From: Macrostomum lignano
Lineage: Eukaryota
Length of the DNA stretch: 64,000 bases
Assembly: GCA_002269645.1 (NCBI GenBank)
Contig: NIVC01000064.1
Coordinates: 186,001 to 250,000 of the forward strand
Direction: 5' to 3'
In this document: positions 20,671 through 44,600 of the stretch, piece after piece
How the letters are laid out: each line of letters begins with the position of its first letter
How positions within the stretch are numbered: the stretch's first letter is position 1
Program-made: the position numbers and the translations under genes
Notes under the pieces: generated by a model
Seen by the model: only the letters and a program-made list of their open reading frames with translations
Database searches by the model: none
Told to the model about the DNA's origin: nothing

Positions 20671-21758
20671 TTCATGGGTGCCTTCGTCGCCGCGCTCGGA
20701 GACCAGCGCGAGGCGGAGTATTTCGACATCAGCACCACCTTAGAGCCGCTGCGGAGCAGACGGTCCCGCTGATGCGGCCAGCGCAGAAATTTCGCTGCCT
20801 GTCTGGCAGAGCGACCCAACCATCAGGCAGGCGCGGCTCAACATCGAGCGACTCCGCAGAAACCGGCGGCCCACAGGCGACGCTGAAGACGCGTTTGAGC
20901 GCCTTCTAGACGAGCGGCAGCAGGCCGCTGTCGACGACGCCGTCAGGTTCAGCACTGCAGCCGGCCCCGACGTGAAGAGCCGCGCAGTGTGGACGGCCGT
21001 CAGGACTCTGACGGGGCGCAAAAAGCGCGTGGCGCTGAACCTGACTGGCGACACCCCGGAGGAGCGCAGGAATGAATTGCGCGACTTCTTCGTCGGCATC
21101 GTGAACGCGCCCGCGTCGCCGCTGCCTTCCAGTTTTGCGCTCCCACTGGACACGCCGCTCCCACCTGACGTGCCGCGGCGCAGATGGGCAGACGACCAAG
21201 CTCGCACGCTGCCTACGTTCACCTACCTCGGCGGTCTGGTGCCCCACGTGGAAGAGGACCTCCGGCGGCGCAGAGGACTTGCCTGGGCGGCCTTTCGTTC
21301 GATCCGAGCCGTCCTCCAGTCTGAAGCGCTGCCCGACCGCCAGAGGGCTCGGCTGTGGCAGGCGGTGGTCGAAACCGTTCTGCTTTACAACGCCGAGACG
21401 TGGATGCTGACGGCTACGCTAGAGCGGCAGCTGGACTCGGCGCACTCACGGCTGCTCCGCGTGGCCTTTCGAGCTGACGAGAGCGTCGGGACTGAGGCCC
21501 TATACGATCGGACCAAGCTGCAGCGCCCGTCCACCATCCTGCGCCGGCGGCGACTTCAACTGGCGGGCCACGTGATCCGGGCCGAGGGCTACTGCCCCCA
21601 ACCTGTTCAGGACGTCCTGCTGTGCGACGCTGGGCCGCCCGACACTGCCAACGGAGCGGACTTTGTTCGCTCCCAGGCTCTGCGGCGCCCCATCTGACGC
21701 GCCCTGCTCTAACTGTGACCTTTTGCTTGCAGGGCCGCGTATTTTGTTGTTGTTGTTG
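20671..21758 (+). mobile_element. RTE-clade LINE derivative, 5'-truncated and lacking the RT core
   Basis: ORF 20972-21697 has thumb/C-terminal motifs (FTYLGG, AWAAF, VETVLLYNAETW, RRRRLQLAGHVIR) but no YADD; (TTG)n tail; 10-bp TSD TTGGTCGCAA at 20661-20670 and 21759-21768. Confidence 0.85.
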
Positions 21759-22300: not shown

Positions 22301-25300
22301 CTAGGCGCTAGTGTCTTCGTTGTCAGAGTTGCAGATGCTGCCAATAGTTCTGTTGGCGTCAACGATAGCAATATCGCCTCCGGATTGTCTAACAAAGATC
22401 TTGGCATTCTTGTTGATGCTGCACTTGCCCAGGTAGCGGACTTGAATTAATTTGCCCTTCAGATGCGAGTTGCATAGATCGCCCGCTTCCTATTAGAAGG
22501 CATATGTTCGCAGATTATTTGCTTTGAAAAATTTTGTTAGAATGCATAAATGACCTGTTACATGGGGCACTCGTCCTGAAGTTAAATAATTTGCTTTAAA
22601 TTTGAGAAAAATTCCTGTCTAAATGTGAGTACATGCATTTGCCCTGAGCGCAGGGCGCTTAGCCAGCACTTTTCAGAGAGACAATTAACGGCGCCAGCAC
22701 CAGGGGCTTTAGCACCAGGGGCTTTAGCACCAGGGCCTTTAGTACCAGTGGCTTTAGCACCAATGGCTTTAGCACCAGGGGCTTTAGCACTAGGGGCTTT
22801 AGCACCAATGGCTTTAGCACCAGGGGTCTTAGCACCAGGGGTCTTAGCACCAGGGGCTTTAGCACCAGGGGCTTTAGCACCAGGGGCTTTAGCAACAGGA
22901 GCGCCAGCACCAGTGGCTTTAGCACCAGGGGCTTTAGCACCAGGGGCTTTAGCACCAGGGGCTTTAGCACCAGGGGCTTTAGCACCAGGGGCTTTAGCAC
23001 CAGGGGCTTTAGCACCAGGGGCTTTAGCACCAGGGGCTTTAGCACCAGGGGCTTTAGCACCAGGGGCTTTAGCACCAGGGGCTTTAGCACCAGGGGCTTT
23101 AGCACCAGGGGCTTTAGCACCAGGGGCTTTAGCACCAGGGGCTTTAGCACCAGGGGCTTTAGCACCAGGGGCTTTAGCACCAGGGGCTTTAGCACCAGGG
23201 GCTTTAGCACCAGGGGCTTTAGCACCAGGGGCTTTAGCACCAGGGGCTTTAGCACCAGGGGCTTTAGCACCAGGGGCTTTAGCACCAGGGGCTTTAGCAC
23301 CAGGGGCTTTAGCACCAGGGGCTTTAGCACCAGGGGCTTTAGCACCAGGGGCTTTAGCACCAGGGGCTTTAGCACCAGGGGCTTTAGCACCAGGGGCTTT
23401 AGCACCAGGGGCTTTAGCACCAGGGGCTTTAGCACCAGGGGCTTTAGCACCAGGGGCTTTAGCACCAGGGGCTTTAGCACCAGGGGCTTTAGCACCAGGG
23501 GCTTTAGCACCAGGGGCTTTAGCACCAGGGGCGCCAGCACCAGGGGCGCCAGCACCAGGGGCGCCAGCACCAGGGGCGCCAGCACCAGGGGCGCCAGCAC
23601 CAGGGGCGCCAGCACCAGGGGCGCCAGCACCAGGGGCGCCAGCACCAGGGGCGCCAGCACCAGGGGCGCCAGCACCAGGGGCGCCAGCACCAGGGGCGCC
23701 AGCACCAGGGGCGCCAGCACCAGGGGCGCCAGCACCAGGGGCGCCAGCACCAGGGGCGCCAGCACCAGGGGCGCCAGCACCAGGGGCGCCAGCACCAGGG
23801 GCGCCAGCACCAGGGGCGCCAGCACCAGGGGCGCCAGCACCAGGGGCGCCAGCACCAGGGGCGCCAGCACCAGGGGCGCCAGCACCAGGGGCGCCAGCAC
23901 CAGGGGCGCCAGCACCAGGGGCGCCAGCACCAGGGGCGCCAGCACCAGGGGCGCCAGCACCAGGGGCGCCAGCACCAGGGGCGCCAGCACCAGGGGCGCC
24001 AAAGCTTGCTACAAGCTTGCTGCTGGACTTTTCCTAGCTAGTGATTGGTGGAGCGATGGGCACTATTTGCTTCCCAGTTCCCAATTACGCCGCTCTTGCC
24101 TGAATTGTAGCAACTGTCTAAAAATAGATAGACGTGGCCCACTACCCGCTTAACCCCCGGAAATGTTGATTCCCCGGAAATTAAACAGCACTCACCTCTT
24201 CACCGCAGTGATGCAAGTAGGAATTATTCATAAATCGAACTTCGTTGTCGCCAGAAATGCGGATGTACACACCGTCGGGCTTGGCGACGAGCACCTCGGC
24301 CAGGTATGCGTGGCCCAGTTTAAAGCGTACATTTTTTGCATTCTTGATCCGTCGTCTCTCTCTGAGCTGATGAATGACCCACCTGCTCAACAGCTGCAAG
24401 AATCCAAGGACAATGCCGATGCCCAGTAGGACAAATAGGCCGCACAGGTACTCGAATCCCAGAGGCACCTTGTTCTCAATGTCCGTCTGTCCGGAGTAGC
24501 AGCGATTCAAATCGAAATACTTCGAGCGCAGCTGAGCAAAATCGACGTCTTTGCGCGTTTTTAACTGATTAGTCAACTCCGCTTCGAACCGGAACCCTTT
24601 TCGATAGAACCAAGTCAGAAAGTGGCTGTTGGCGATGTTGCCCATGACGGTCAACTTGCAGTCTTTATTCTTTACGTAGCTCAACGTATCGGCGCTGGCA
24701 ATCAGAATGAAAGTTGGATCGGCCAGCACCTTAGCAACGGCTTCTTCGGTGCTGTTCAGGTACATCTCGTCAGGCCACTCTCGCACGGCCCTGGCGTGCA
24801 CCTTTGGCCAGTAGGTCTGCACTTCGGTGTCCACTAGCGAGTCTCTGATGTAGCCCCACTTGTAGCCCTTGCTATCGGCCAGGTCGCCTACAGAGGCGAA
24901 GAAAACGTGCCCCTCTGGCTTGATAAGAAAGGCTACCAGGTTGCTCAGGTAGGTTGTCATGTACAGCAGAGTGGAAAACCAGAGTAGCAGGGTGAAGAGT
25001 CGGCTGGACAGCTTCTTCGGCTCGGTCTCCACCTTGGACATAAGAAACGAGGACAGGACTAGGAAGAAGGATTCGTACGGCGAGTACATTCGCTGGTTCT
25101 CCGTGTTCGGGCTGATCTTGTCGCATGCGTACAGAGTGGCCGAGAGCAGTACAATTGCGATTACTATGCTCACCCAGACGTAGAACGAGAACGGATGAAA
25201 CACGTGCAGAAAGTCGGTGGAATGAACCACCTTTCTTCTGAGCATCTGAATGCCCTCCTGAACCATGTCAACCGAGAGATCGACGTGATCGACTCGATCG

Positions 25301-28300
25301 AACGTTGGCGACAGAAAATTCAGGCTAACATCGGCGGACTAAAACGAGAGATACATGTACGTTGAACAATTTTGAAAAGATTTTTAGGCTGCAAAAATGT
25401 TTCTTAAACAGGTTCGTGTAAAATTATAACACCTTACCCCGTTTTTAACCATTTCGAACACTTCGTTCTGGCTTTTGACAGGTATCAATTTGTACTCGAA
25501 GCCCAGATGAAGCCGCATCGCCTCCACAATCTCAATGCAGAGTCCTCGAGCAGTTTTTGTAGCGCTGTTGTAGCTGTAGAAGTACGGCTCGGTCTGGATA
25601 GTTTTCGACGATGGATTCCAGGGTTAGGAGCTACATAAAAAGGTCCTAGATCCCAGATCCTGGATCCCAGATCCTAGATCCCAGATCCTAGATCCCAGAT
25701 CCTAGATCCCAGATCCTAGATCCCAGATCCTAGATCCCAGATCCTAGATCCCAGATCCTAGATCCCAGATCCTAGATCCCAGATCCTAGATCCCAGATCC
25801 TAGATCCCAGATCCTAGATCCCAGATCCTAGATCCCAGATCCTAGATCCCAGATCCTAGATCCCAGATCCTAGATCCCAGATCCTAGATCCCAGATCCTA
25901 GATCCCAGATCCTAGATCCCAGATCCTAGATCCCAGATCCTAGATCCCAGATCCTAGATCCCAGATCCTAGATCCTAGATCCCAGATCCTAGATCCCAGA
26001 TCCTAGATCCCAGATCCTAGATCCCAGATCCTAGATCCCAGATCCTAGATCCCAGATCCTAGATCCCAGATCCTAGATCCCAGATCCTAGATCCCAGATC
26101 CTAGATCCCAGATCCTAGATCCCAGATCCTAGATCCCAGATCCTAGATCCCAGATCCTAGATCCCAGATCCTAGATCCCAGATCCTAGATCCCAGATCCT
26201 AGATCCCAGATCCTAGATCCCAGATCCTAGATCCCAGATCCTAGATCCCAGATCCTAGATCCCAGATCCTAGATCCCAGATCCTAGATCCCAGATCCTAG
26301 ATCCCAGATCCTAGATCCCAGATCCTAGATCCCAGATCCTAGATCCCAGATCCTAGATCCCAGATCCTAGATCCCAGATCCTAGATCCCAGATCCTAGAT
26401 CCCAGATCCTAGATCCCAGATCCTAGATCCCAGATCCTAGATCCCAGATCCTAGATCCCAGATCCTAGATCCCAGATCCTAGATCCCAGATCCTAGATCC
26501 CAGATCCTAGATCCCAGATCCTAGATCCCAGATCCTAGATCCCAGATCCTAGATCCCAGATCCTAGATCCCAGGTTCCACTGTGGTTTTCAGGTTACCTC
26601 GTAAGCTGCAAAGACTATTAGGCTTCGCGATATTGCACCAGCTCCATTGTACTCTGGTCTGTATGGCGACAAACTGGTTCCATCGTTGATCCACTTTCCA
26701 GTCAAGCTAAAAATGTCGCTTTCTGGTTTGCTTCGGTTGCTGCGGAACACGTCAATTTGCACTTTTGAGCGCACGTGAGTGGACTCGTTGTACGTGAAGG
26801 GGCCAGTCAGAGGGAACACGATACTCGTCTCCTGTCAAATTAAAGTAAGTTTGAGGTTCAGCGTCATTAGGCTCTGATCTTATTTGGCCGGTTCCGGTTT
26901 GTCCGGTTCCAGTTTGTCCGGTTCCAGTTTGTCCGGTTCCGGTTTGTCCGGTTCCGGTTTGTCCGGTTCCGGTTTGTCCGGTTCCGGTTTGTCCGGTTCC
27001 GGTTTGTCCGGTTCCGGCTTGTCCAGTTTCCAGAGAATGTTAGTCGATTTCTAGTCATAAAAATATGGCGCCCTTTGAAGACAGAATTAGAAACTTTGGC
27101 CTGACTTGATCTTCAGGAGGTCTACTATATTTGACTGGCTGTAATTTGCCACAAATTGACTCCCCTGAACCCTAACCCTAAACCCTACTCTAACAATAAA
27201 CCAAACCAAACGCCAAACCCTAATCTAAACCTCAACTTTAACCCTAACCTAAAGCGCCGGCAGTTAATTTTTGGCAGTCAAATGTCACCGACAGTCAAAT
27301 GTCACTGACAGTCAAATGTCACAGACATTCAAATGTCACCGACAGTCAAATGTCACCGACAGTCAAATGGCACCGACAGTCAAATGTCACCGACAGTCAA
27401 ATGTCACCGACAGTCAAATGTCACCGACAGTCAAATGTCACCGACAGTCAAATAGCACCGACAGTCAAATGGCACTGACAGTCAAATGTCACCGACAGTC
27501 AAATGTCACCGACATTCAAATGGCACCGACAGTCAAATTTCACCAATCAGCATAAGCTGCCCTTACCGTGGCAATCGTCTCTGTCAAAGTGGCACTGGTG
27601 GCCAATCGGCTCCATCTGCTGAACGACTTCAAAAAATGATTCATGCAGTCCAACACAAACGGCTGCAGCATTTCGCTTTGCGAACATTTGTTGTGATCGG
27701 ATAGGCGGAACGCGTAAAACTCGACTTCGCTTCGATAGAATTTGGTAAGATAGCGCTCGCTGTCGAACTATGATGGGACATGGAATGGTGAATAATGGCA
27801 TCATGCAGGAATGTATTCAGGGCATTGGTTGTTAAATTAAGCAAGGCCTAGGTGTCACATCCTGCTGGGGGGGGGGCGTGGCCTAGAAGTCTAGCGCGGC
27901 CGATCTGAGGTGCCAGCGGCCCAAGTTTGCTGGGATAAACTGGAATCTCGGCTTGGCTCTGCTCGTGCAATTACCGGCCTTGAGGGCCAACCCCCCAAGG
28001 CACAGTGAAGTGTACATGCCAAACGATAAATAAAGTTAGTGCCGCTGTACACTCCCGTGTGAGTGTGCGCCTGTGCGTATGACTGCGTACGTATCCGCGC
28101 GCTTGTGTGCCTGCTCAGGGGAGTCGGCGGAATGGGCAGTAATGCCTCTCGCCGGTCGTGTGACAATGTCGCTCAAAGACCAACTCACTAACCGAATGTT
28201 GCTTTAACTCCAGGTCTTAAACGAATCCTTGCTCTAATTACAATAAGGTTAAATAGGTCATTAGTGCACCCGATGCTGCTGACCCAACTCAGTTTATCAA

Positions 28301-31300
28301 ACAAGTTATTCTTTTATCCCGGTAAAACGCCGAACAACCAGAAGGTACTCACCAGACTGGGAAGGAAAAAGTACTGTGACGATACGAAAATCCCCACTCT
28401 TGAAGCCTGAAAAAAAATTTCAGATCAGTTAATCAAAACGGACATAAAAATGCTAAGTATTGTCATACTGGCATCGGATTAGCTATCCTCAAACCTGAGT
28501 GAGAGCTCTCTCCATAAGCGGCAGATTGGGCTCGTCAAACAGCATAATCCAGCCCATACCGGATGACAGAGTGTTCGGGTTGTAACGGGCAAATAAATTG
28601 TAGATTTGCTCATCCGAACTATTCGCCCGGATGGTGTGAACGCTGAATACTCGTCTGTCAAAGTTCACCAGGAACTGGCTGCTGGCTGCGGGGAACACAG
28701 TGGGTGCTCTGATCTGACACAATCACAATAAACTGGTTAGCAAACAGCACCAGGGCCTTTAGTACCAGTGGCTTTAGCACCAATGGCTTTAGCACCAGGG
28801 GCTTTAGCACTAGGGGCTTTAGCACCAATGGCTTTAGCACCAGGGGCTTTAGCACTAGGGGCTTTAGCACCAATGGCTTTAGCACCAGGGGCTTTAGCAC
28901 CAGGGGCTTTAGCACCAGGGGCTTTAGCAACAGGAGCGCCAGCACCAGTGGCTTTAGCACCAGGGGCTTTAGCACCAGGGGCTTTAGCAACAGGAGCGCC
29001 AGCACCAGTGGCTTTAGCACCAGGGGCTTTAGCACCAGGGGCTTTAGCACCAGGGGCTTTAGCACCAGGGGCGCCAGCACCAGGGGCGCCAGCACCAGGG
29101 GCGCCAGCACCAGGGGCGCCAGCACCAGGGGCGCCAGCACCAGGGGCGCCAGCACCAGGGGCGCCAGCACCAGGGGCGCCAGCACCAGGGGCGCCAGCAC
29201 CAGGGGCGCCAGCACCAGGGGCTTTAGCACCAGGGGCTTTAGCACCAGGGGCGCCAGCACCAGGGGCGCCAGCACCAGGGGCGCCAGCACCAGGGGCTTT
29301 AGCACCAGGGGCGCCAGCACCAGGGGCTTTAGCACCAGGGGCGCCAGCACCAGGGGCTTTAGCACCAGGGGCGCCAGCACCAGGGGCTTTAGCACCAGGG
29401 GCGCCAGCACCAGGGGCGCCAGCACCAGGGGCGCCAGCACCAGGGGCGCCAGCACCAGGGGCGCCAGCACCAGGGGCGCCAGCACCAGGGGCGCCAGCAC
29501 CAGGGGCGCCAGCACCAGGGGCGCCAAAGCTTGCTACAAGCTTGCTGCTGGACTTTTCCTAGCTAGTGATTGGTGGAGCGATGGGCACTATTTGCTTCCC
29601 AGTTCCCAATTACGCTGCTCTTGCCTGAATTGTAGCAACTGTCTAAAAATAGATAGACGTGGCCCACTACCCGCTTAACCCCCGGAAATGTTGATTCCCC
29701 GGAAATTAAACAGCTCTCACCTCTTCACCGCAGTGATGCAAGTAGGAATTATTCATAAATCGAACTTCGTTGTCGCCAGAAATGCGGATGTACACACCGT
29801 CGGGCTTGGCGACGAGCACCTCGGCCAGGTATGCGTGGCCCAGTTTAAAGCGTACATTTTTTGCATTCTTGATCCGTCGTCTCTCTCTGAGCTGATGAAT
29901 GACCCACCTGCTCAACAGCTGCAAGAATCCAAGGACAATGCCGATGCCCAGTAGGACAAATAGGCCGCACAGGTACTCGAATCCCAGAGGCACCTTGTTC
30001 TCAATGTCCGTCTGTCCGGAGTAGCAGCGATTCAAATCGAAATACTTCGAGCGCAGCTGAGCAAATTCGACGTCTTTGCGCGTTTTTAACTGATTAGTCA
30101 ACTCCGCTTCGAATCGGAACCCTTTTCGATAGAACCAAGTCAGAAAGTGGCTGTTGGCTATGTTGCCCATCACGGTCAACTTGCAGTCTTTATTCTTTAC
30201 GTAGCTTAACGTATCGGCGCTGGCAATCAGAATGAAATTTGGATCGGCCAGCACCTTAGCAACGGCTTCTTCGGTGCTGTTCAGGTACATCTCGTCAGGC
30301 CACTCTCGCACGGCCCTGGCGTGCACTTTTGGCCAGTAGGTCTGCACTTCGGTGTCCACTAGCGAGTCTCTGATGTAGCCCCACTTGTAGCCCTTGCTAT
30401 CGGCCAGGTCGCCTACAGAGGCGAAGAAAACGTGCCCCTCTGGCTTGATAAGAAAGGCTACCAGGTTGCTCAGGTAGGTTGTCATGTACAGCAGAGTGGA
30501 AAACCAGAGTAGCAGGGTGAAGAGTCGGCTGGACAGCTTCTTCGGCTCGGTCTCCACCTTGGACATGAGAAACGAGGACAGGACTAGAAAGAAGGATTCG
30601 TACGGCGAGTACATTCGCTGGTTCTCCGTGTTCGGGCTGATCTTGTCGCATGCGTACAGAGTGGCCGATAGCAGTACAATTGCGATTACTATGCTCACCC
30701 AGACGTAGAACGAGAACGGATGAAACACGTGCAGAAAGTCGGTGGAATGAACCACCTTTCTTCTGAGCATCTGAATGCCCTCCTGAACCATGTCAACCGA
30801 GAGATCGACGTGATCGACTCGATCGAACGTTGGCGACAGAAAATTCAGGCTAACATCGGCGGACTAAAACGAGAGATACATGTACGTTGAACAATTTTGA
30901 AAAGATTTTTAGGCTGCAAAAATGTTTCTTAAACAGGTTCGTGTAAAATTATAACACCTTACCCCGTTTTTAACCATTTCGAACACTTCGTTCTGGCTTT
31001 TGACAGGTATCAATTTGTACTCGAAGCCCAGATGAAGCCGCATCGCCTCCACAATCTCAATGCAGAGTCCTCGAGCAGTTTTTGTAGCGCTGTTGTAGCT
31101 GTAGAAGTACGGCTCGGTCTGGATAGTTTTCGACGATGGATTCCAGGGTTAGGAGCTACATAAAAAGGTCCTAGATCCCAGATCCTGGATCCCAGATCCT
31201 AGATCCCAGATCCTAGATCCCAGATCCTAGATCCCAGATCCTAGATCCCAGATCCTAGATCCCAGATCCTGGATCCCAGATCCTAGATCCCAGATCCTAG

Positions 31301-34300
31301 ATCCCAGATCCTAGATCCCAGATCCCAGATCCTAGATCCCAGATCCTAGATCCCAGATCCTAGATCCCAGATCCTAGATCCCAGATCCTAGATCCCAGAT
31401 CCTAGATCCCAGATCCTAGATCCCAGATCCTAGATCCCAGATCCTAGATCCCAGATCCTAGATCCCAGATCCTGGATCCCAGATCCTAGATCCCAGATCC
31501 TAGATCCCAGATCCCAGATCCTAGATCCCAGATCCTAGATCCCAGATCCTAGATCCCAGATCCTAGATCCCAGATCCTAGATCCCAGATCCTAGATCCCA
31601 GATCCTAGATCCCAGATCCTAGATCCCAGATCCTAGATCCCAGATCCTAGATCCCAGATCCTAGATCCCAGATCCTAGATCCCAGATCCTAGATCCCAGA
31701 TCCTAGATCCCAGATCCTAGATCCCAGATCCTAGATCCCAGATCCTAGATCCCAGATCCTAGATCCCAGATCCTAGATCCCAGATCCTAGATCCCAGATC
31801 CTAGATCCCAGATCCTAGATCCCAGATCCTAGATCCCAGATCCTAGATCCCAGATCCTAGATCCCAGATCCTAGATCCCAGATCCTAGATCCCAGATCCT
31901 AGATCCCAGATCCTAGATCCCAGATCCTAGATCCCAGATCCTAGATCCCAGATCCTAGATCCCAGATCCTAGATCCCAGATCCTAGATCCCAGATCCTAG
32001 ATCCCAGATCCTAGATCCCAGATCCTAGATCCCAGATCCTAGATCCCAGATCCTAGATCCCAGATCCTAGATCCCAGATCCTAGATCCCAGATCCTAGAT
32101 CCCAGATCCTAGATCCCAGATCCTAGATCCCAGATCCTAGATCCCAGATCCTAGATCCCAGATCCTAGATCCCAGATCCTAGATCCCAGATCCTAGATCC
32201 CAGATCCTAGATCCCAGATCCTAGATCCCAGATCCTAGATCCCAGATCCTAGATCCCAGATCCTAGATCCCAGATCCTAGATCCCAGATCCTAGATCCCA
32301 GATCCTAGATCCCAGATCCTAGATCCCAGATCCTAGATCCCAGATCCTAGATCCCAGATCCTAGATCCCAGATCCTAGATCCCAGATCCTAGATCCCAGA
32401 TCCTAGATCCCAGATCCTAGATCCCAGATCCTAGATCCCAGATCCTAGATCCCAGATCCTAGATCCCAGATCCTAGATCCCAGATCCTAGATCCCAGATC
32501 CTAGATCCCAGATCCTAGATCCCAGATCCTAGATCCCAGATCCTAGATCCCAGATCCTAGATCCCAGATCCTAGATCCCAGATCCTAGATCCCAGATCCT
32601 AGATCCCAGATCCTAGATCCCAGATCCTAGATCCCAGATCCTAGATCCCAGATCCTAGATCCCAGATCCTAGATCCCAGATCCTAGATCCCAGATCCTAG
32701 ATCCCAGATCCTAGATCCCAGATCCTAGATCCCAGATCCTAGATCCCAGATCCTAGATCCCAGATCCTAGATCCCAGATCCTAGATCCCAGATCCTAGAT
32801 CCCAGATCCTAGATCCCAGATCCTAGATCCCAGATCCTAGATCCCAGATCCTAGATCCCAGATCCTAGATCCCAGATCCTAGATCCCAGATCCTAGATCC
32901 CAGATCCTAGATCCCAGATCCTAGATCCCAGATCCTAGATCCCAGATCCTAGATCCCAGATCCTAGATCCCAGATCCTAGATCCCAGATCCTAGATCCCA
33001 GATCCTAGATCCCAGATCCTAGATCCCAGATCCTAGATCCCAGATCCTAGATCCCAGATCCTAGATCCCAGATCCTAGATCCCAGATCCTAGATCCCAGA
33101 TCCTAGATCCCAGATCCTAGATCCCAGATCCTAGATCCCAGATCCTAGATCCCAGATCCTAGATCCCAGATCCTAGATCCCAGATCCTAGATCCCAGATC
33201 CTAGATCCCAGATCCTAGATCCCAGATCCTAGATCCCAGATCCTAGATCCCAGATCCTAGATCCCAGATCCTAGATCCCAGATCCTAGATCCCAGATCCT
33301 AGATCCCAGATCCTAGATCCCAGATCCTAGATCCCAGATCCTAGATCCCAGATCCTAGATCCCAGATCCTAGATCCCAGATCCTAGATCCCAGATCCTAG
33401 ATCCCAGATCCTAGATCCCAGATCCTAGATCCCAGATCCTAGATCCCAGATCCTAGATCCCAGATCCTAGATCCCAGATCCTAGATCCCAGATCCTAGAT
33501 CCCAGATCCTAGATCCCAGATCCTAGATCCCAGATCCTAGATCCCAGATCCTAGATCCCAGATCCTAGATCCCAGATCCTAGATCCCAGATCCTAGATCC
33601 CAGATCCTAGATCCCAGATCCTAGATCCCAGATCCTAGATCCCAGATCCTAGATCCCAGATCCTAGATCCCAGATCCTAGATCCCAGATCCTAGATCCCA
33701 GATCCTAGATCCCAGATCCTAGATCCCAGATCCTAGATCCCAGATCCTAGATCCCAGATCCTAGATCCCAGATCCTAGATCCCAGATCCTAGATCCCAGA
33801 TCCTAGATCCCAGATCCTAGATCCCAGATCCTAGATCCCAGATCCTCCTAGATCCCAGATCCTAGATCCCAGATCCTAGATCCCAGATCCTAGATCCCAG
33901 ATCCTAGATCCCAGATCCTAGATCCCAGATCCTAGATCCCAGATCCTAGATCCCAGATCCTAGATCCCAGGTTCCACTGTGGTTTTCAGGTTACCTCGTA
34001 AGCTGCAAAGACTATTAGGCTTCGCGATATTGCACCAGCTCCATTGTACTCTGGTCTGTATGGCGACAAACTGGTTCCATCGTTGATCCACTTTCCAGTC
34101 AAGCTAAAAATGTCGCTTTCTGGTTTGCTTCGGTTGCTGCGGAACACGTCAATTTGCACTTTTGAGCGCACGTGAGTGGACTCGTTGTACGTGAAGGGGC
34201 CAGTCAGAGGGAACACGATACTCGTCTCCTGTCAAATTAAAGTAAGTTTGAGGTTCAGCGTCATTAGGCTCTGATCTTATTTGGCCGGTTCCGGTTTGTC

Positions 34301-37300
34301 CGGTTCCAGTTTGTCCGGTTCCGGTTTGTCCGGTTCCGGTTTGTCCGGTTCCGGTTTGTCCGGTTCCGGTTTGTCCGGTTCCGGTTTGTCCGGTTCCGGT
34401 TTGTCCGGTTCCGGCTTGTCCAGTTTCCAGAGAATGTTAGTCGATTTCTAGTCATAAAAATATGGCGTCCTTTGAAGACAGAATTAGAAACTTTGGCCTG
34501 ACTTGATCTTCAGGAGGTCTACTATATTTGACTGGCTGTAATTTGCCACAAATTGACTCCCCTGAACCCTAACCCTAAACCCTACTCTAACAATAAACCA
34601 AACCAAACGCCAAACCCTAATCTAAACCTCAACTTTAACCCTAACCTAAAGCGCCGGCAGTTAATTTTTGGCAGTCAAATGTCACCGACAGTCAAATGTC
34701 ACTGACAGTCAAATGTCACAGACATTCAAATGTCACCGACAGTCAAATGTCACCGACAGTCAAATGGCACCGACAGTCAAATGTCACCGACAGTCAAATG
34801 GCACCGACAGTCAAATGTCACCGACAGTCAAATGACACCGACAGTCAAATGTCACCGACAGTCAAATGTCACCCACAGTCAAATGGCACCGACAGTCAAA
34901 TGTCACCAATCTGCATAAGCTGCCCTTACCGTGGCAATCGTCTCTGTCAAAGTGGCACTGGTGGCCGATCGGCTCCATCTGCTGAACGACTTCAAAAAAT
35001 GATTCATGCAGTCCAACAGAAACGGCTGCAGCATTTCGCTTTGCGAATACTTGTTGTGATCGGATAGGCGGAACGCGTAAAACTCGACTTCGCTTCGATA
35101 GAATTTGGTAAGATAGCGCTCGCTGTCGAACTATGATGGGACATGGAATGGTGAATAATGGCATCATGCAGGAATGTATTCAGGGCATTGGTTGTTAAAT
35201 TAAGCAAGGCCTAGGTGTCACATCCTGCTGGGGGGGGGGGCGTGGCCTAGAAGTCTAGCGCGGCCGATCTGAGGTGCCAGCGGCCCAAGTTTGCTGGGAT
35301 AAACTGGAATCTCGGCTTGGCTCTGCTCGTGCAATTACCGGCCTTGAGGGCCAACCCCCCAAGACACAGTGAAGTGTACATGCCTAACGATAAATAAAGT
35401 TAGTGCCGCTGTACACTCCCGTGTGAGTGTGTGCCTGTGCGTATGACTGCGTACGTATCCGCGCGCTTGTGTGCCTGCTCAGGGGAGTCGGCGGAATGGG
35501 CAGTAATGCCTCTCGCCGGTCGTGTGACAATGTCGCTCAAAGACCAACTCACTAACCGAATGTTGCTTTAACTCCAGGTCTTAAACGAATCCTTGCTCTA
35601 ATTACAATAAGGTTAAATAGGTCATTAGTGCACCCGATGCTGCTGACCCAACTCAGTTTATCAAACAAGTTATTCTTTTATCCCGGTAAAACGCCGAACA
35701 ACCAGAAGGTACTCACCAGACTGGGAAGGAAAAAGTACTGTGACGATACGAAAATCCCCACTCTTGAAGCCTGAAAAAAAATTTCAGATCAGTTAATCAA
35801 AACGGACATAAAAATGCTAAGTATTGTCATACTGGCATCGGATTAGCTATCCTCAAACCTGAGTGAGAGCTCTCTCCATAAGCGGCAGATTGGGCTCGTC
35901 AAACAGCATAATCCAGCCCATACCGGATGACAGAGTGTTCGGGTTGTAACGGGCAAATAAATTGTAGATTTGCTCATCCGAACTATTCGCCCGGATGGTG
36001 TGAACGCTGAATACTCGTCTGTCAAAGTTCACCAGGAACTGGCTGCTGGCTGCGGGGAACAAAGTGGGTGCTCTGATCTGTTTATTACGCATGGAGGAAA
36101 AGAACAACTTAGGAGTGCTACTTAAGGAGCGGGATATTTTTGTTTTAAGTCTCACTGTAAAGATAACAAGAACTACTGTGTTAGTTGTACCATTGACCTT
36201 CTGTCACAGACAATCACAATAGACTGTCGTTTTTTCGGGAAACTTCATGAATCAAGAATAGAATAGTCTATGGTTTTAAGTGGGAGGGGGCTGCAAGAAG
36301 TTCAATGATCGAATTCTATAATTAGTATCGTCTATGACGATCTAAATGGCAATTTGGACAAATCAAAACGGGACGCAAGCCAGACATTCAAGCCAGGCTG
36401 CTTGAGAATACACGACCATAGAATGTGGAATGTACAATCGAAATGAGTAAAAGCCATTCAAAACGGGAAATCTCCAAAAGTCAGTGGAAACACGACTTCT
36501 AGTGTCTATGGCAGAAAACTCCCATCAATTCCTCCACAAGCCAGTAGGAGAGATGGAAGAATCTTCACTTTTTTTGCTTTGCTTTTGCTTCAGCGCGTGT
36601 CTATGGCAAATACCTCTCACCCCTACGGGGCTCTATGGAAGTGTGTAAGCCTTCCTTGTAACTGAAGGCTGTAATTAAATCAGATTAGCACTTCATCTTT
36701 ATTCCTTCCTCCCGATCCATTGTTTTTCATTGATTCTGCGCTTTTGTCTATGGCCCAAACTTTATTATACAACAGGACAACGCCAAAACCTACAATCAGC
36801 TGATTAAAGGTAAAAAACAATGGCAAAAGTTGCTTTGAAAGTGGCTTTTACCTGGAGTACCATCGGACACGGCCACCAGAGAAGTTCTCTTGTAAACCAA
36901 AGAAACCGAGTAGAGAGCTTCGCTTAGGTGATAATTGTCTATTTGAATCTCAAATATATTTGGCGTGCCTGGCGGAAAGCTGAACACATTTTTCTTAATA
37001 ATAAAGTAAGGAATTTCCATTGAGTAGGAGGCGATAGCCAGGCTGATGTAGTAATCAGATAGCACAGCTGCCGCACCGACCATGGTGAGGTTCTGTTGAA
37101 CTGTGCGGATTGGAAGATCAGGTTAAAATCAATAAAATTCTATGCACATGCTAACATCATTGTTTACGTTCCGTCTCTCCTAGTCGCTGTCACTCTCTAC
37201 TGTCACTCCCTGATAATCCCCGACTGTCACTCCATGATAATCCCCGACTGTCACTCCATGATAATCCCCGACTGTCACTCCATGATAATCCCCGACTGTC

Positions 37301-38340
37301 ACTCCATGATAATCCCCGACTGTCACTCCATGATAACCCCAGACTGTCACTCCATGATAATCCCCGACTGTCACTCCCTGATAATCCCCGACTGTCACTC
37401 CATGATAATCCCCGACTGTCACTCCCTGATAATCCCCGACTGTCACTCCATGATAATCCCCGACTGTCCCTCCATGACAATCCCCGACTGTCACTCCATG
37501 ATAATCCCCGACTGTCACTCCATGATAATCCCCGACTGTCACTCCATGATAACCCCAGACTGTCACTCCATGATAATCCCCGACTGTCACTCCATGATAA
37601 TCCCCGACTGTCATTCCATGATAATCCCCGACTGTCACTCCCTGATAATCCCCGACTGTCACTCCATGATAATCCCCGACTGTCACTCCATGACAATCCC
37701 TGACTGTCACTCCATGACAATCCACGACTGTCACTCCATTATATCCGCAACTGTCACTTCAATACACTGTATATCTGCAATTATCACTCGGCCATTATTT
37801 CCAAAATTATCACTCCATTACATCCCAAATTGTCACTCCATTGTATCATAAATTGTCACTCCATTATATCCGCCAATTGTCACTCCATTACATCCCGAAT
37901 TGTCACTCCATTACATCCCAAATTGTCACTCCATTACATCCCCAATTGTCACTCCATTTCATCTCCAATTGTCACTCCAATATATACCAAATTGTCACTC
38001 CATTATTTCCCCCAATTTTCAATTCATTTCATCCCCAATTGTCACTCATTTATATCCCCCGACTGTCACTCGATGTCAATCGCCAGTGCCACCCCATGTT
38101 TCTCTCTTTCACCTCGTTGCGCATTTAATTTAAGCCAGCTTTCACAAAAGCGATATCACATTCAACATGCAGACTCACCAGTTTCTGCGTGGGAGGCATC
38201 TTCAAACAGGCCTCTGATTGGCAGATAAGTGAAGTTAAGCGATATGCCAGTAGTCAAGACATAGGGAAAAAGTGTCCTATAAAGGTTTCGCTGAGTTTCC
38301 AGAGATTTCACGGCGGAGAAGACATCGTAATCTTCAATAG
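22301..38340 (-). CDS. Divergent ionotropic glutamate receptor-like gene. Exons: 38179-38340, 36852-37100, 36191-36267 (contains a TGA; alternative is extending the next exon to 36154), block B [35859-36077, 35717-35770, 34930-35130, 33995-34228, 30963-31118, 29721-30863], block A [28495-28713, 28353-28406, 27567-27767, 26598-26831, 25438-25593, 24196-25338], terminal exon 22301-22489. First (signal) exon not found.
   Basis: ATD-like exons, LBD S1 (EPYF..GLCIEIV; SADVSLNFLSPTFDRVDHVDLS), M1-M4 with M3 TTYLSNLVAF, and S2 cysteines. All listed junctions are GT-AG and phase-compatible. Confidence 0.85.
22690..24001. repeat. 15-bp satellite (GGGGCTTTAGCACCA, then GGGGCGCCAGCACCA), about 87 units, in the last iGluR intron
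   Basis: Period 15; sharp switch of variant at about 23531; lies between donor 24195 and acceptor 22490. Confidence 0.97.
25644..26573. repeat. 14-bp satellite (CCAGATCCTAGATC), about 66 units, intronic, copy A
   Basis: Period 14, a dimer of the 7-mers CCAGATC and CTAGATC. Confidence 0.97.
26887..27027. repeat. 15-bp array (GGTTCCGGTTTGTCC)n; second copy at about 34284-34424
   Basis: Direct reading. Confidence 0.9.
27167..27545. repeat. Degenerate CCCTAA-rich tract followed by a 17-bp minisatellite (GTCACCGACAGTCAAAT); second copy at about 34560-34910
   Basis: Direct reading; period 17. Confidence 0.85.
28746..29526. repeat. 15-bp satellite, copy B, about 52 units with interleaved variants
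   Basis: Same two unit variants as 22690-24001, in a different order. Confidence 0.97.
31169..33970. repeat. 14-bp satellite (CCAGATCCTAGATC), about 200 units, intronic, copy B
   Basis: Period 14, nearly homogeneous. Confidence 0.97.
37195..38090. repeat. 24-bp minisatellite (ATAATCCCCGACTGTCACTCCATG), about 22 units to about 37740, then a degenerate extension; iGluR intron
   Basis: Direct reading. Confidence 0.93.
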
Positions 38341-38471
38341 CTGAAAATTTAACAAATCAGAGTGGTTCACCATGCTTTATGGTTCTGAACAACATTGGCA
38401 ATGGATGAAAACAACAATGAGTTATAAATCTATACAAGGGGCAAAATGAATCAAGAATTAATTGATAATCT

Positions 38472-39012
38472 ATATCCAACATCATGGATAAATGCAGTTA
38501 GAATTTGGATTGCTAATCTATCCAACATCATGGATAAATGCAGTTAGAATTTGGATTGCTAATCTATCCAACATCACAGATAAATGCAATTAGAATTTGG
38601 ATTGCTAATCTATCCAACATCATGGATTAATGAAATTAGAATTTGGATTGCTAATCTATCCAACATCATGGATAAATGCAATTAGAATTTGGATTGCTAA
38701 TCTATTCAACATCACGGATAAATGCAATTAGAATTTGGATTGCTAATCTATCCAACAACATGGATAAATGCAATTAGAATTTGGATTGCTAATCTATCCA
38801 ACATCATGGATAAATGCAGTTAGAATTTGGATTGCTAATCTATCCAACATCATGGATTAATGAAATTAGAATTTGGATTGCTAATCTATCCAACATCATG
38901 GATTAATGAAATTAGAATTTGGATTGCTAATCTATCCAACAACATGGATAAATGCAATTAGAATTTGGATTGCTAATCTATCCAACATCATGGATAAATG
39001 CAGTTAGAATTT
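38472..39012. repeat. 46-bp minisatellite, about 12 units
   Basis: Unit CTATCCAACATCATGGATAAATGCAGTTAGAATTTGGATTGCTAAT. Confidence 0.95.
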
Positions 39013-39022
39013 ATCCATTAGA

Positions 39023-39085
39023 GTTAAGTGTCTTGCTCAAGGACACAAATTGTTCCAAGTGAGTCAAAAATCGAACCCCCGACCT
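39023..39085 (+). mobile_element. MIR/L2-like SINE or LINE 3' fragment
   Basis: GTTAAGTGTCTTGCTCAAGGACAC...ATCGAACCCC resembles the conserved MIR/L2-type tail motif. Confidence 0.45.
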
Positions 39086-39419
39086 TCAAGTCGTCATTCA
39101 AGTCGACTGTCAGCTGTCAAGGCAGCAGCCAAATTCGTAGGTACCGCCAGCACTAGAAGCGCAAAAGCTATAGGGGGTCATGTCCCCCATCGCCCCCCAC
39201 CCCTTGCCCAGGCCCATGCTTCGAATCGCTCACTCGAAAATAAAAAGAGACAATGGAAAAGGCACCAAAAGAAGCGATTTCCGTTCGATGTGGAAGCGCT
39301 AACAAATTGTATTTACCTAGCAAAGGCATTTATAACAAAAATACGAATTATACATGTATATGGAATTAAAAACTATTGGACACACATATCAACTATCTAC
39401 ACATTGTCAAAATTTACAA

Positions 39420-41608
39420 GTAGACACAACAATCACCTGTAAGACACAACCATCAATTCTTAGACACAATCATAACCTGTCAGCATCACCTGTTAGACAC
39501 AATCATCACCTGTCAGCATCACCTGTTAGACACAATCATCACCTGTCAGCATCACCTGTTAGACACAATCATCACCTGTCAGCATCACCTGTTAGACACA
39601 ATCATCACCTGTCAGCATCACCTGTTAGACACAATCATCACCTGTCAGACACAGTCATCACCTGTTAGACACAATCATCACCTGTTAGACACAAGCATCA
39701 CCTGTTAGACAAAATCATCACCTGTTAGACACAGTCATCACCTGTTAGACACAACCATCACCTGTTAGACACAAGCATCACCTGTTAGACAAAATCATCA
39801 CCTGTTAGACACAGTCATCACCTGTTAGACACAACCATCACCTGTTAGACACAAGCATCACCTGTTAGACAAAATCATCACCTGTTAGACACAGTCATCA
39901 CCTGTTAGACACAACCATCACCTGTTAGACACAGTCATCACCTGTTAGACAAAATCATCACCTGTTAGACAAAATCATCACCTGTTAGACAAAATCATCA
40001 CCTGTTAGACACAGTCATCACCTGTTAGACACAATCATCACCTGTTAGACACAAGCATCACCTGTTAGACAAAATCATCACCTGTTAGACACAGTCATCA
40101 CCTGTTAGACACAACCATCACCTGTTAGACACAAGCATCACCTGTTAGACAAAATCATCACCTGTTAGACACAATCATCACCTGTTAGACACAACCATCA
40201 CCTGTTAGACACAAGCATCACCTGTTAGACACAATCATCACCTGTTAGACATAATCATCACATGTTAGACACAATCTCACCTGTCAGACACAATCATCAC
40301 CTGTTAGACATAATCATCACCTGTTAGACATAATCATCACCTGTTAGACATAATCATCACCTGTTAGACACAAGCATCACCTGTTAGACACAAGCATCAC
40401 CTGTTAGACACAATCATCACCTGTTAGACATAATCATCACCTGTTAGACATAATCATCACCTGTTAGACACAATCTCACCTGTTAGACACAAGAATCACC
40501 TGTTAGACACAGTCATCACCTGTCAGACACAATTATCACCTGTCAGACACAGTCATCACCTGTCAGACACAGTCATCACCTGTTAGACACAGTCATCACC
40601 TGTTAGACACAGTCATCACCTGTTAGATACAGTCATCACCTGTTAGACACAGTCATCACCTGTTAGATACAGTCATCACCTGTTAGACACAATCATCACC
40701 TGTTAGACACAGTCATCACCTGTTAGACACAATCATCACCTGTTAGACACAGTCATCACCTGTTAGACACAACCATCACCTGTTAGACATAATCATCACC
40801 TGTCAGACACAGTCATCACCTGTTGGACGCAGTCATCACCTGTTAGACACAGTCATCACCTGTTAGATACAGTCATCACCTGTTAGACACAGTCATCACC
40901 TGTTAGATACAGTCATCACCTGTTAGACACAATCATCACCTGTTAGACACAGTCATCACCTGTTAGATACAGTCATCACCTGTTAGACACAGTCATCACC
41001 TGTTAGATACAGTCATCACCTGTTAGACACAATCATCACCTGTTAGACACAGTCATCACCTGTTAGACACAACCATCACCTGTTAGACATAATCATCACC
41101 TGTTAGACACAATCATCACCTGTTAGACACAATCATCACCTGTTAGACACAATCATCACCTGTTAGACATAATCATCACCTGTTAGACATAATCATCACC
41201 TGTTAGACATAATCATCACCTGTTAGACATAATCATCACCTGTTAGACACAATCATCACCTGTTAGACACAATCATCACCTGTTAGACATAATCATCACC
41301 TGTTAGACATAATCATCACCTGTTAGACACAATCATCACCTGTTAGACACAATCATCACCTGTTAGACACAATCATCACCTGTTAGACACAATCATCACC
41401 TGTTAGACACAATCATCACCTGTTAGACATAATCATCACCTGATAGACATAATCATCACCTGTTAGACACAATCCTCACCTGTTAGACATAATCATCACC
41501 TGTTAGACATAATCATCACCTGTTAGACATAATCATCACCTGTTAGACACAGTCATCACCTGTTAGACACAGTCATCACCTGTTGGACGCAGTCATCACC
41601 TGTCAGAC
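39420..41608. repeat. 20-bp minisatellite (CATCACCTGTTAGACACAAT), about 105 units
   Basis: Direct reading; starts with a short 33-bp (20+13) variant stretch. Confidence 0.97.
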
Positions 41609-41620
41609 AACCTAGTCAGT

Positions 41621-44600
41621 CTATAATCCGGCGTAATTTCTTAGAAATTGACGCAGAAACCTCAGCGGTCTCCAGTAGCAGTCTCTGTTTCCGCCAGCGG
41701 CAGCAGGTCTGGGCGATCGCCAACCAGAATCCAAAGTTGCTTTGAGCAACAGAAAACTTTTGTCATCTCTACACCGCAACAGATGGATTGGCCAGCTCCA
41801 GCTGTTGCCCTCTTCTAGGGGAAGAGCTGGCCAAGCATCAAGCCACGCAGAAGGAGTCTTCGCTGAAAAGGTTCCCTCCTCTAGTGGGATCACGACGAAA
41901 GGTTCCTGTATAGGAAGGAGATTAAATGGCGGTTGATACATATGGATATTATTGTGTCCAACAGGTGATGACTGTGGCTAACAGGTGATGACTGTGTCTA
42001 ACAGGTGATGACTGTGTCTAACAGGTGATGATTATGTCTAACAGGTGATGATTGTGTCTAACAGGTGATGCTTGTGTCTAACAGGTGATGCTTGTGTCTA
42101 ACAGGTGATGACTGTGTCTAACATGTGATGCTTGTGTCTGAAAGGTGATGACTGTGTCTAACAGGTGATGCTTGTGTCTAACAGGTGATGACTGTGTCTA
42201 ACAGGTGATGCTTGTGTCTGACAGGTGATGATTGTGTCTAACAGGTGATGCTTGTGTCGCGCTCTCACCGCACAGTCGGGCCTATAGAAGGCCAGTTCGC
42301 TGCCCTCGCCATCACTGAGCCGCCCTCTAACGCACAACGCCCTGTCGCCGTGACACCGAAGCCACGCCTGCTCCCACCAGTGAATCCGAGGAAGAAATGG
42401 CGAATTATAGATTCGAACTTGCGTTGTCTGCTCTGAGTCATTTTGAAACGTTTACCATCGTTCTCTGTTGTCATGGTAACCAAATAGTCGCTTTCTTGTC
42501 CAAGCCACGACAAACAGTGAAAACCGCAAACCGGTCCTTCAATGCAAATCCGCCGGGCTAGGCAAAGACGAGAATTCGACTCCCTGTCTCCATGGCAACC
42601 GCAGTTGACGTTAATTAGCGAGACGAATCCGTTAGAATAGGCGCTCTGCACCGTCAGGACTGCCAACTGACGAGAGATCGGGAGCTTCACAGCGCTAAAA
42701 AGAAAGCTCGTGCCGGAATCGAACTTCATGGAAACGAACGGAATCTTTGCAGATGCTCTCTGTTCAATAGGCAAAGTTAAAAGCAGCAGACGGCTTTCTG
42801 TAGTTAGCAGCAGAAGCAAAGGTCGGCCAGAGCAGCTCGGGCAGGAGCGATAAGACAGCGCATCAAGTACTCTTTCTTTGTTGCGCAGCTGAAATACTCC
42901 AATCGGAGCAAGCTTGGCGCAACAATTCAAGCGAATCGGTACGACAGCGTAACTGGCTTCGGACTCTGTCCAGCCCGGAAGCACGAGGTAATCTGCCGAG
43001 CCGCGAGCCGGATCAGCCGACATCAAAGCGTCAAAGTTGCAGACTTGAAAGCAGAGCCGAATGATGTGCAGTTGAGCTGTGTCAAGCAGCCGGATTTCGA
43101 CCGTTGCTGCTGCTGCTGTGCTGTCTTGGGTGCCGGAGTCTGCGGATGCGGTCACACTCTGTAACAGTGTGCGGAACAGTGAACGGTACTTAAACCTGAG
43201 TGACCAACTTTAGAGTGACCACTTTAAAATGATACCGAAACCGGAGTGACCAATTTAAAATGATACCGAAACCGGAGTGACCAATTTAAAATGATACTGA
43301 AACCGGAGTGACCAAATTAAAATAATACTGAAACCTTGGAGTGACCAAATTAAAATGATACTAAAACCTTGGAGTGACCAACTTAATATGATACTGAAAC
43401 CGGAGTGACCAACTTAATACGATACTGAAACCGTAGTGACCACTTTAAAATGATACCGAAACCGGAGTGACCAATTTAAAATGATACCGAAACCGGAGTG
43501 ACCAATTTAAAATGATACTGAAACCGGAGTGACCAAATTAAAATAATACTGAAACCTTGGAGTGACCAAATTAAAATGATACTAAAACCTTGGAGTGACC
43601 AACTTAATATGATACTGAAACCGGAGTGACCAACTTAAAATGATACTGAAACCGGAGTGACCAACTTAAAATGATACTGAAACCTTGGAGTGACCAACTT
43701 AATATGATACTGAAACCGGAGTGACCAATTTAAAATGATACTGAAACCGGAGTGACCAATATAAAATGATACTGAAACCGGAGTGACCAACTTAAAATGA
43801 TACTAAAACCTTGGAGTGACCAACTTAATATGATACTGAAACCGGAGTGACCAACTTAATACGATACTGAAACCGTAGTGACCACTTTAAAATGATACCG
43901 AAACCGGAGTGACCAATTTAAAATGATACCGAAACCGGAGTGACCAATTTAAAATGATACTGAAACCGGAGTGACCAAATTAAAATAATACTGAAACCTT
44001 GGAGTGACCAAATTAAAATGATACTAAAACCTTGGAGTGACCAACTTAATATGATACTGAAACCGGAGTGACCAACTTAAAATGATACTGAAACCGGAGT
44101 GACCAACTTAATACGATACTGAAACCGTAGTGACCAATTTAAAATGATACTGAAACCTTGGAGTGACCAATTTAAAATGATACTGAAACCTTGGAGTGAC
44201 CAACTTAAAATGATACTGAAACCTTGGAGTGACCAACTTAATATGATACTGAAACCGGAGTGACCAATTTAAAATGATACTGAAACCGGAGTGACCAACT
44301 TAATACGATACTGAAACCGAGACCGATTTAAAATGATACTGAAACCTTGGAGTGACCAACTTAAAATGATACTGAAACCGGAGTGACCAACTTAAAATAA
44401 TACTGAAACCGAGACCAATTAAAAATGATACTGAAACCTTGGAGTGACCAACTTAAAATGATACTGAAACCGGAGTGACCAACTTAAAATGATACTGAAA
44501 CCGGAGTGACCAACTTAAAATGATACCGAAACCGGAGTGACCAATATAAAATGATACTGAAACCGGAGTGACCAATATAAAATGATACTGAAACCGGAGT

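Follow-up and report, generated by a model that had tools for sequence, protein, structure and literature searches.

A probable young intragenic tandem duplication of six exons in an ionotropic glutamate receptor-like gene of Macrostomum lignano

The flip and flop exons of AMPA receptors are tandem mutually exclusive exons, and the exon duplications of DMD and the partial tandem duplication of KMT2A are intragenic structural variants in which several exons are repeated in tandem. Tandem exon duplication is accepted as an origin of mutually exclusive exons (Kondrashov and Koonin, 2001, as cited in PMC6071210; PMC9013439; PMC9741552), and for exons IIIb and IIIc of FGFR2 exclusivity enforced by nonsense-mediated decay (NMD) has been described (Jones et al., 2001, as cited in PMC6071210). 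Here we analyse 64,000 nt of the flatworm Macrostomum lignano (assembly Mlig_3_7, GCA_002269645.1; contig NIVC01000064.1, positions 186,001 to 250,000; hereafter the window), in which a gene of the ionotropic glutamate receptor (iGluR) superfamily, Mlig005955.g1, contains a block of six exons twice. This probably represents a real and young intragenic tandem duplication of ~6 kb, which breaks the reading frame when the two copies are joined at the native acceptor.

The GenBank record of the locus matches window positions 12301-48335 base for base and places the annotated gene on the minus strand at 38335-22301, with copy B transcribed before copy A. An exhaustive profile-free protein search identified PAA92080.1 (‘hypothetical protein BOX15_Mlig005955g1, partial’, 857 amino acids) as the product of the duplicated gene, and one block together with the terminal exon shares 99% identity with it. 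The GenBank model is a coding sequence (CDS) that contains the B block only and leaves copy A inside a 7.2-kb ‘intron’. The annotation of Mlig_3_7 was transcript-guided, using StringTie/TACO on RNA-seq data and a de novo transcriptome mapped by BLAT (PMC5730564).

Self-blastn with the minisatellite arrays included showed direct tandem repeats in head-to-tail order (23221-26573 versus 28746-32105 and 25641-28716 versus 33028-36080), each with an identity of ~98%, a figure that mostly reflects the minisatellites. With the arrays excluded, 32 substitutions and 5 indels separate the copies; the 1865-nt length gap of the 14-nt array is one of these indels. An earlier note on this DNA, made from the sequence alone, had proposed that six exons occur twice, flanked by 5' exons and a terminal exon (22489-22301) that are each present once, and both the alignment of the copies and the exon chain described below confirm this arrangement. 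The duplicated DNA reaches past the coordinates given in that note, to ~22726 on the left and ~36229 on the right. The hand count for the 1143-nt exon (25338-24196/30863-29721) also proved accurate: there are exactly 10 substitutions, 8 synonymous and 2 replacements (T/N and D/E), and no disabling change. Within the window we found no other long non-satellite repeat and no further iGluR paralog.

The two ends of the duplication were located from the sequence at the junction and from the order of the array units (Table 1). Between the 15-nt array of copy B and the CAG common to both copies lie 28-29 nt that are absent from the flank of copy A's own array; on the minus strand, the sequence before A exon 1 reads ...GGTGCTG TTTGCTAA CCAGTTTATTGTGATTGTGT CAG/ATCAGAGC.... 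The remnant within this stretch matches 36227-36208, ~150 nt upstream of B exon 1, at 17 of 20 nt. This match is unique in the window on both strands, with ~0.004 chance matches expected by a rough calculation, and copy A therefore retains a mutated remnant of the intron between U2 and exon 1. Copy A also lacks 123 nt (36200-36078) that are bounded in copy B by the repeat ACAGA. At the other end, the B array opens with the rare variant units of the A array from unit 3 onwards (AGCACCAGGGCCTTT AGTACCAGTGGCTTT AGCACCAATGGCTTT ...), and this common run of variant units sets the left end of the duplication at ~22726, 30 nt into the array. There are no Ns at the locus. On the minus strand the junction also contains the motif CTAAC (28740-28736), 23 nt upstream of an AG at 28715-28714.

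Both breakpoints lie in introns, one in the last intron, 30 nt into its 15-nt minisatellite, and the other ~180 nt before the exon with which the duplicated block starts. The untidy join, with its 9-nt insert, mutated 20-nt remnant, 123-nt deletion and ACAGA microhomology, looks like the scar of a repair by template switching or end joining. After the duplication the intronic minisatellites would have changed in length, and parts of the two copies were probably homogenised by gene conversion, as the clustering of the differences between them suggests. The length changes of the intronic minisatellites since the duplication are large, and the 15-nt array shows internal gain or loss of units; the introns of the gene also carry 17-, 24-, 46- and 20/40-nt arrays.

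The exon chain of U1, U2, the six B exons and the terminal exon translates into PAA92080.1 residue for residue, and in both copies all acceptors are AG, all donors are GT and the exons contain no stops. The earlier note had described the block as 2007 nt or 669 codons with phase 0 at both ends. The six exons of that model do add up to this length (219 + 201 + 54 + 234 + 156 + 1143 nt) with AG/GT sites in both copies, but PAA92080.1 and a paralog contradict this chain. In the chain that yields PAA92080.1, the first duplicated exon starts at 36049/28685, which is 28 nt further in than the 36077/28713 of the earlier model. The 54-nt exon at 34556-34503/27159-27106, which has a purine-rich acceptor, is absent from the chain and 35770-35717/28406-28353 is used instead. 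Likewise, an upstream exon E0 (ending at 36191) is not part of the chain and has no in-frame join to U2, which has a phase-1 donor. In the paralog, a full-length M. lignano protein with 39% identity (P0003), DGTL/SSSHF aligns to DGTP/ASSQF with nothing between, DIFVLPSL aligns to exon 1b, and there is no counterpart of E0 or of the exon named E3 in the earlier model. The block is thus 1979 nt long, enters in phase 1 and leaves in phase 0. Hand-built exon models can mistake exactly the phase that is decisive.

Another candidate was rejected as well: the 123 nt absent from copy A might be read as 41 codons of a longer B exon, but their GC content at third codon positions is 0.39, versus 0.56-0.69 in the exons, and the annotation disagrees. 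The region of exon 2 (27543-27816/34906-35179, minus strand) is open in two frames for 75-89 codons. In the older ML2 assembly the gene prediction behind the protein P0001 switches among three frames at exon 2, which points to many indel errors in that assembly.

Table 1. Features of the duplicated receptor gene, with positions in the window
Feature	Position	Strand	Basis
U1, first annotated (partial) coding exon	38179..38335	-	exon chain equals PAA92080.1
U2, amino-terminal domain (ATD), single copy; donor CCAG|gtaaaa, phase 1	36852..37100	-	exon chain equals PAA92080.1
Copy B (transcriptionally upstream), reaching from the 15-nt array to a point ~180 nt before the first exon	28746..36229		self-blastn, array unit order, remnant match
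B exon 1, 191 nt; phase-1 acceptor ccccgcag/CC	35859..36049	-	exon chain equals PAA92080.1; paralog junction
B exon 1b, 54 nt, ASRVGIFVSSQYFFLPSL; not in the earlier model	35717..35770	-	exon chain; paralog
B exon 2, 201 nt, ATD; Y, L, S at the three variable residues	34930..35130	-	exon chain
B exon 4, 234 nt; final part of the ATD, first part of S1	33995..34228	-	exon chain
14-nt minisatellite of copy B, ~201 units	31169..33970		
B exon 5, 156 nt; ligand-binding S1	30963..31118	-	exon chain; Pfam
B exon 6, 1143 nt; end of S1, M1-M3, S2, M4 and 60-aa tail; donor GAG/gtgaga, phase 0	29721..30863	-	
15-nt minisatellite of copy B, ~52 units; first units match the A array from its third unit on	28746..29526		
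Duplication junction: 9-nt insert (28737-28745) and 20-nt diverged remnant of the U2/exon-1 intron (28717-28736)	28717..28745		
Copy A (transcriptionally downstream)	22726..28716		self-blastn, array unit order
A exon 1; acceptor ccccgcag/CC homologous to that of B	28495..28685	-	splice-site alignment
A exon 1b, 54 nt	28353..28406	-	
A exon 2; C, V, L at the variable residues	27567..27767	-	
A exon 4	26598..26831	-	
14-nt minisatellite of copy A, ~67 units	25644..26573		
A exon 5	25438..25593	-	
A exon 6, 1143 nt; donor GAG/gtgagt	24196..25338	-	
15-nt minisatellite of copy A, ~87 units; the duplication begins on the left at 22726, 2 units in from the distal edge of the array	22696..23997		
Terminal exon, single, 62 codons and stop; phase-0 acceptor	22301..22489	-	

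The phases determine which combinations of blocks can be read. The block is an asymmetric unit, and an mRNA that holds one block, either B or A, encodes a normal receptor of 857 amino acids. The annotated B-only form is open, and so is the A-only form, which differs from it at five residues (Y245C, L255V, S272L, N623T and E680D). Since the block enters in phase 1 and leaves in phase 0, the combination of both blocks (B+A) is out of frame at the homologous acceptor (28685). The junction GAAGAG/CCAGCAGCC shifts the frame to ...HHCGEE-PAASSW-stop, with the stop at 28667-28665 (codon 802), and the product of 801 residues loses the 62 residues of the terminal exon. Six exon junctions lie downstream of this stop, and a premature stop with exon junctions downstream is the usual mark of an NMD target. 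By the AG that lies further upstream (28715-28714; exon start 28713) the junction becomes GAAGAG/ATCAGAGC and the frame stays open for 1526 amino acids; entered from U2, the acceptor at 28713 or 36077 is out of frame in both copies. The statement in the earlier note that B only, A only and B+A would all be in frame therefore fails for B+A, which is in frame only via the AG before 28713, an acceptor that neither the annotation nor the alignment with the paralog supports.

From this arrangement a likely fate of the transcripts can be outlined. Default exon recognition would include all twelve exons, and the resulting out-of-frame B+A mRNA would either be a target of NMD or give a receptor without its last 62 residues. 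A single-block mRNA would need six exons to be skipped, across a 7.2-kb intron for the B-only form or an 8.2-kb intron for the A-only form. The output of the locus would be set by default splice-site competition combined with removal of the out-of-frame product.

The extent of divergence gives an indication of the origin of the copies. In unique intron sequence copies A and B differ at 8 of 1390 positions (0.58%). Within a subgenome of the inbred DV1 line heterozygosity is close to zero; between homeologs the divergence is 2.2% across the genome and 1.1% in CDS, with large indels making up most of the difference (PMC10733133). At the homeolog average 30.6 intron differences would be expected instead of 8 (Poisson P ~1e-6). 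Judged by their sequences, the copies are neither alleles nor typical homeologs.

The supported exon model contains 14 exonic differences, 9 synonymous and 5 replacement. Synonymous divergence (dS) is 0.021 and replacement divergence (dN) 0.0033; the formal dN/dS ratio, which the earlier note had proposed as a check, is 0.16 (Fisher p = 0.0009). Of the ATD replacements listed in that note, C/Y, V/L and L/S do lie in an ATD exon, but an additional V/L (28698/36062) is intronic because the first duplicated exon starts at 36049/28685. Across unique sequence, the 22 differences form clusters (index of dispersion, p = 0.006; coefficient of variation of the spacing, p = 0.016), and over ~1.5 kb around the 14-nt array (26800-25271) there are none. 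Synonymous divergence (2.1%) exceeds the divergence of the unique introns (0.58%; p = 0.0096). The clustering and the high dS may reflect patchy gene conversion between A and B, perhaps begun in the arrays, or exon variants imported from homeologous copies, or an origin of the duplication by unequal exchange between two haplovariants. With any of these three origins, the low dN/dS would be inherited from functional genes and would not come from selection on the duplicate. The low ratio is thus no proof that both blocks are used, as it is equally expected from functional haplovariants or gene conversion. A technical cause, namely a side effect of polishing, is possible for this pattern as well, as the assembly was polished by Pilon with Illumina and RNA-seq reads (PMC5730564). 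However, at least the C/S-frame variant of exon 2 is also present in ML2.

Several points weigh against a real duplication that is read one block at a time. Firstly, expanded haplovariants are a common error in Mlig_3_7, for which collapsed ones are known too (PMC10733133). The ML2 assembly, in which the same order of blocks is found, was made from the same PacBio reads as Mlig_3_7 (PMC5730564). Other subgenome copies of the gene may be collapsed into this contig, as no second annotated copy was found at >=90% identity in the searched protein collection. Secondly, short RNA-seq reads cannot show whether either flanking junction belongs to A or to B, because the copies are identical in exon 1 and no exonic difference lies closer than 345 nt to the exon-6 donor; therefore, the B-only annotation may be a mapping choice. 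Lastly, the dN/dS of 0.16 could mean that both blocks are under selection, and the CTAAC made by the junction could, together with the AG at 28715-28714, serve copy A and put B+A in frame.

The first of these points correspond to the rival explanation that the earlier note had already raised as a real alternative, i.e. that the assembler laid near-identical haplovariants (of subgenomes S, L1 or L2 of a hidden polyploid) end to end, perhaps via a shared minisatellite. It is a fair rival: besides the known expansion and collapse of haplovariants and the missing second annotated copy, the assembly contains 180 Mb of duplicated blocks at >=95% identity (PMC5730564), the copies differ mainly in the length of a minisatellite (67 versus 201 units), as alleles often do, and the most diverged patches reach 1.7-3.6%, near the divergence of homeologs. 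However, simple stacking would not create the unique junction of 29 nt (a 9-nt insert and a mutated intron remnant) with its 123-nt deletion, the region before B exon 1 lacks a 15-nt array through which an assembly graph could loop back, and the sequence contains no Ns. An intron divergence of 0.58% is too high for alleles (~0) and too low for average homeologs (2.2%), and the copies show no indels of the size of transposable elements, while homeologs mostly differ by large indels (PMC10733133). A word-index protein search with exon 6 gave a garbled protein of the ML2 proteome (P0001) as the sole match, and its order is exons 5-6, exon 2 with the copy-A-specific AAVCVGLH, exons 5-6 and the terminal exon. 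Copy B thus precedes copy A in ML2 as well, and at least one copy-specific variant is shared, which is an agreement between assemblers and not between samples. Since the junction scar, the order in ML2 and the intron divergence of 0.58% favour a real young duplication over stacked haplovariants, an artefact of this kind now seems unlikely.

If the duplication is real, it could also be functional. The two blocks could form a nascent mutually exclusive cassette of six exons, with A or B isoforms distinguished by five residues (three of them in the ATD and two in S2) and with double inclusion removed by the frameshift. Both blocks are intact with all splice sites, A-only and B-only are open, and as the blocks are equal in length (1979 nt) their exchange keeps the frame; if both are included via the homologous acceptor, translation ends prematurely with six exon junctions still downstream, an NMD-type filter as in FGFR2 IIIb/IIIc. 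The dN/dS of 0.16 (p = 0.0009) and the fact that a transcript-guided pipeline produced a single-block mRNA in GenBank are in line with such a cassette, and so is the accepted origin of mutually exclusive exons by tandem duplication. On the other hand, the only annotated CDS is B-only, and use of A alone or any switching would be hypothetical. Either single-block form would have to skip six good exons across 7.2-8.2 kb, and the five replacements are conservative or of unclear relevance. The low dN/dS is also expected from a haplovariant origin or gene conversion, to which the clustering and the excess of dS over intron divergence point. We therefore consider a functional cassette improbable.

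The known mechanisms of mutually exclusive splicing lead to the same evaluation. A duplication that splits a stem-loop predicts complementarity between the flanks and the copies (PMC6071210). Between the single-copy flanks or the junction and either copy, no perfect complementarity of >=11 nt that could form docking/selector pairs was found, and one 10-mer was at chance level; reverse-strand blastn detected only a 14-nt palindrome, which lies outside the gene body. None of the donors matches the U12-type consensus RTATCCTT, all being of the GT[AGT]A type, and with an inter-block intron of 1035 nt there is no steric hindrance. We observed no evolved device for choosing between the blocks. Frameshift combined with NMD would be the only known exclusivity filter that fits, and it would be a passive one. 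It also depends on the acceptor, as 28685 leads to a stop and the AG before 28713 keeps the frame. On present evidence the locus is not to be counted among mutually exclusive exon clusters, and a mechanism based on RNA structure is absent. There is a slim chance that we see a cassette at its birth, in which a whole six-exon module (half of the ATD, the ligand-binding domain (LBD) and the channel) was duplicated, unequal phases and NMD alone yield A or B, and selection, as the dN/dS of 0.16 might suggest, already acts on the isoforms.

An in-frame double receptor of 1526 amino acids with two LBD-channel modules, made by joining B exon 6 to the junction-created AG at 28713, is very improbable: the reading frame is open across both blocks, the junction offers a consensus-like branch site (CTAAC), a T-rich tract and a CAG 23 nt downstream, and splicing usually takes the AG that comes first behind a branch point, but the homologous AG in copy B (36077) is no annotated acceptor and does not continue the frame of U2, a stronger pyrimidine tract (13/18 versus 10/17) precedes the native acceptor 28 nt downstream, the annotation holds no double-receptor transcript, and, as the earlier note had argued, a second module following M4 would, from iGluR topology, be made on the cytoplasmic side of the membrane with inverted topology.

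By its sequence, the product of the gene is a clear but divergent member of the iGluR superfamily. Pfam Lig_chan (PF00060) scores 67.7-70.3 bits (~1e-18; cut-off 30.8), with an alignment to GluK1 through M1-M4. SBP_bac_3 scores 30.8 bits (cut-off 26.4) for residues 368-689 and spans the channel, as in a bilobed S1/S2 domain that is split by the channel; Lig_chan-Glu_bd stays just below its cut-off of 30, with 28.5 bits. The best solved structures are those of GluK1 and GluK2 (~1e-22). Identity to kainate receptors is ~24%, and to the nearest relatives outside Macrostomum ~23-25%. The M3 gate is degenerate, with TTYLSNLVAF aligned to SSYTANLAAF of GluK1 (motif SYTANLAAF). The arginine of S1 is kept (TFDR aligns to TYVR), and the glutamate of S2 that binds the amino group of the ligand is not, LIAS being aligned to LMES of GluK1. 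The residues of AMPA/kainate-type ligand binding are thus not conserved as a set, and the ligand may be other than glutamate.

The cytoplasmic tail (GHAYLAEVLVAKPDGVYIRISGDNEVRF...KGKLIQVRYLGKCSINKNAKIFVR; 24196-24380 and 22301-22489, minus strand) resembles an S1/oligonucleotide-binding (OB) fold that is split by the last intron. Pfam S1 is below threshold in the tail of the paralog (E 0.0019, 18.9 bits, cut-off 22) and absent from the receptor described here, and a single-sequence AlphaFold model of the tail was unusable (mean predicted local distance difference test score 32). An OB-like domain on the tail of an iGluR, if true, would be unusual.

At its 5' end the receptor gene may be incomplete or mis-annotated. 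The paralog P0003 has a start codon or signal-peptide exon, but a search for one upstream of the gene described here (38336-44000, minus strand) gave no convincing candidate, only repeats. Arrays of 46 nt and of 20/40 nt fill that region, and in GenBank the CDS is flagged as partial. Further upstream, an open frame at 44794-45195 (minus strand) encodes an F-box (Pfam F-box, 1.1e-8) and indicates a neighbouring gene; this was the single Pfam match among neighbouring open reading frames. Just downstream of the terminal exon, a GC-rich open frame of 317 codons (20744-21694, plus strand) resembles a retroelement fragment by eye, and a Pfam search with it gave no match.

If the duplication is real, it offers a clean and datable case of an intragenic tandem duplication with intronic breakpoints. 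The phases of the broken introns, and not the exons, would decide whether the double form can be read, and one AG made by the scar can alter the outcome. The locus could thereby serve as a natural test of whether frame incompatibility and NMD are enough to start mutually exclusive use. In practice, expression, RNA interference and CRISPR work on BOX15_Mlig005955g1 must allow for a hidden second complete block.

Compared with the systems described so far, the locus resembles false duplications by expanded haplovariants in its near-identical adjacent copies, their differing satellite length and the error-prone assembly (PMC10733133), but differs from them by a rearranged unique junction without a gap, by the agreement of two assemblers and by a divergence that fits neither alleles nor homeologs. 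With mutually exclusive exons it shares equal-length homologous exons in tandem, conserved splice sites, a host gene for an ion channel, a kind of protein in which such exons are frequent, and a block swap that keeps the frame. However, the unit comprises six exons with ~2 kb of coding sequence instead of one exon, it is very young (0.6-0.7% divergence), we found no competing RNA structures, and any alternation would here be hypothetical. As in FGFR2 IIIb/IIIc, inclusion of both units leads to a frameshift and a premature stop, and only single-unit mRNAs would be stable; here, this is a passive result of the unequal phases of the breakpoint introns, and an AG 28 nt upstream would restore the frame. 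The duplications of DMD and KMT2A share with this locus intronic breakpoints, whole exons in head-to-tail order, microhomology and a small insertion at the junction, and an outcome set by the phases of the flanking introns, whereas in M. lignano the duplication is a germline feature of a polyploid laboratory line of a flatworm. We therefore regard it as an ordinary structural variant, a further example of intragenic multi-exon tandem duplication, in a gene whose model silently skips one of the two blocks.

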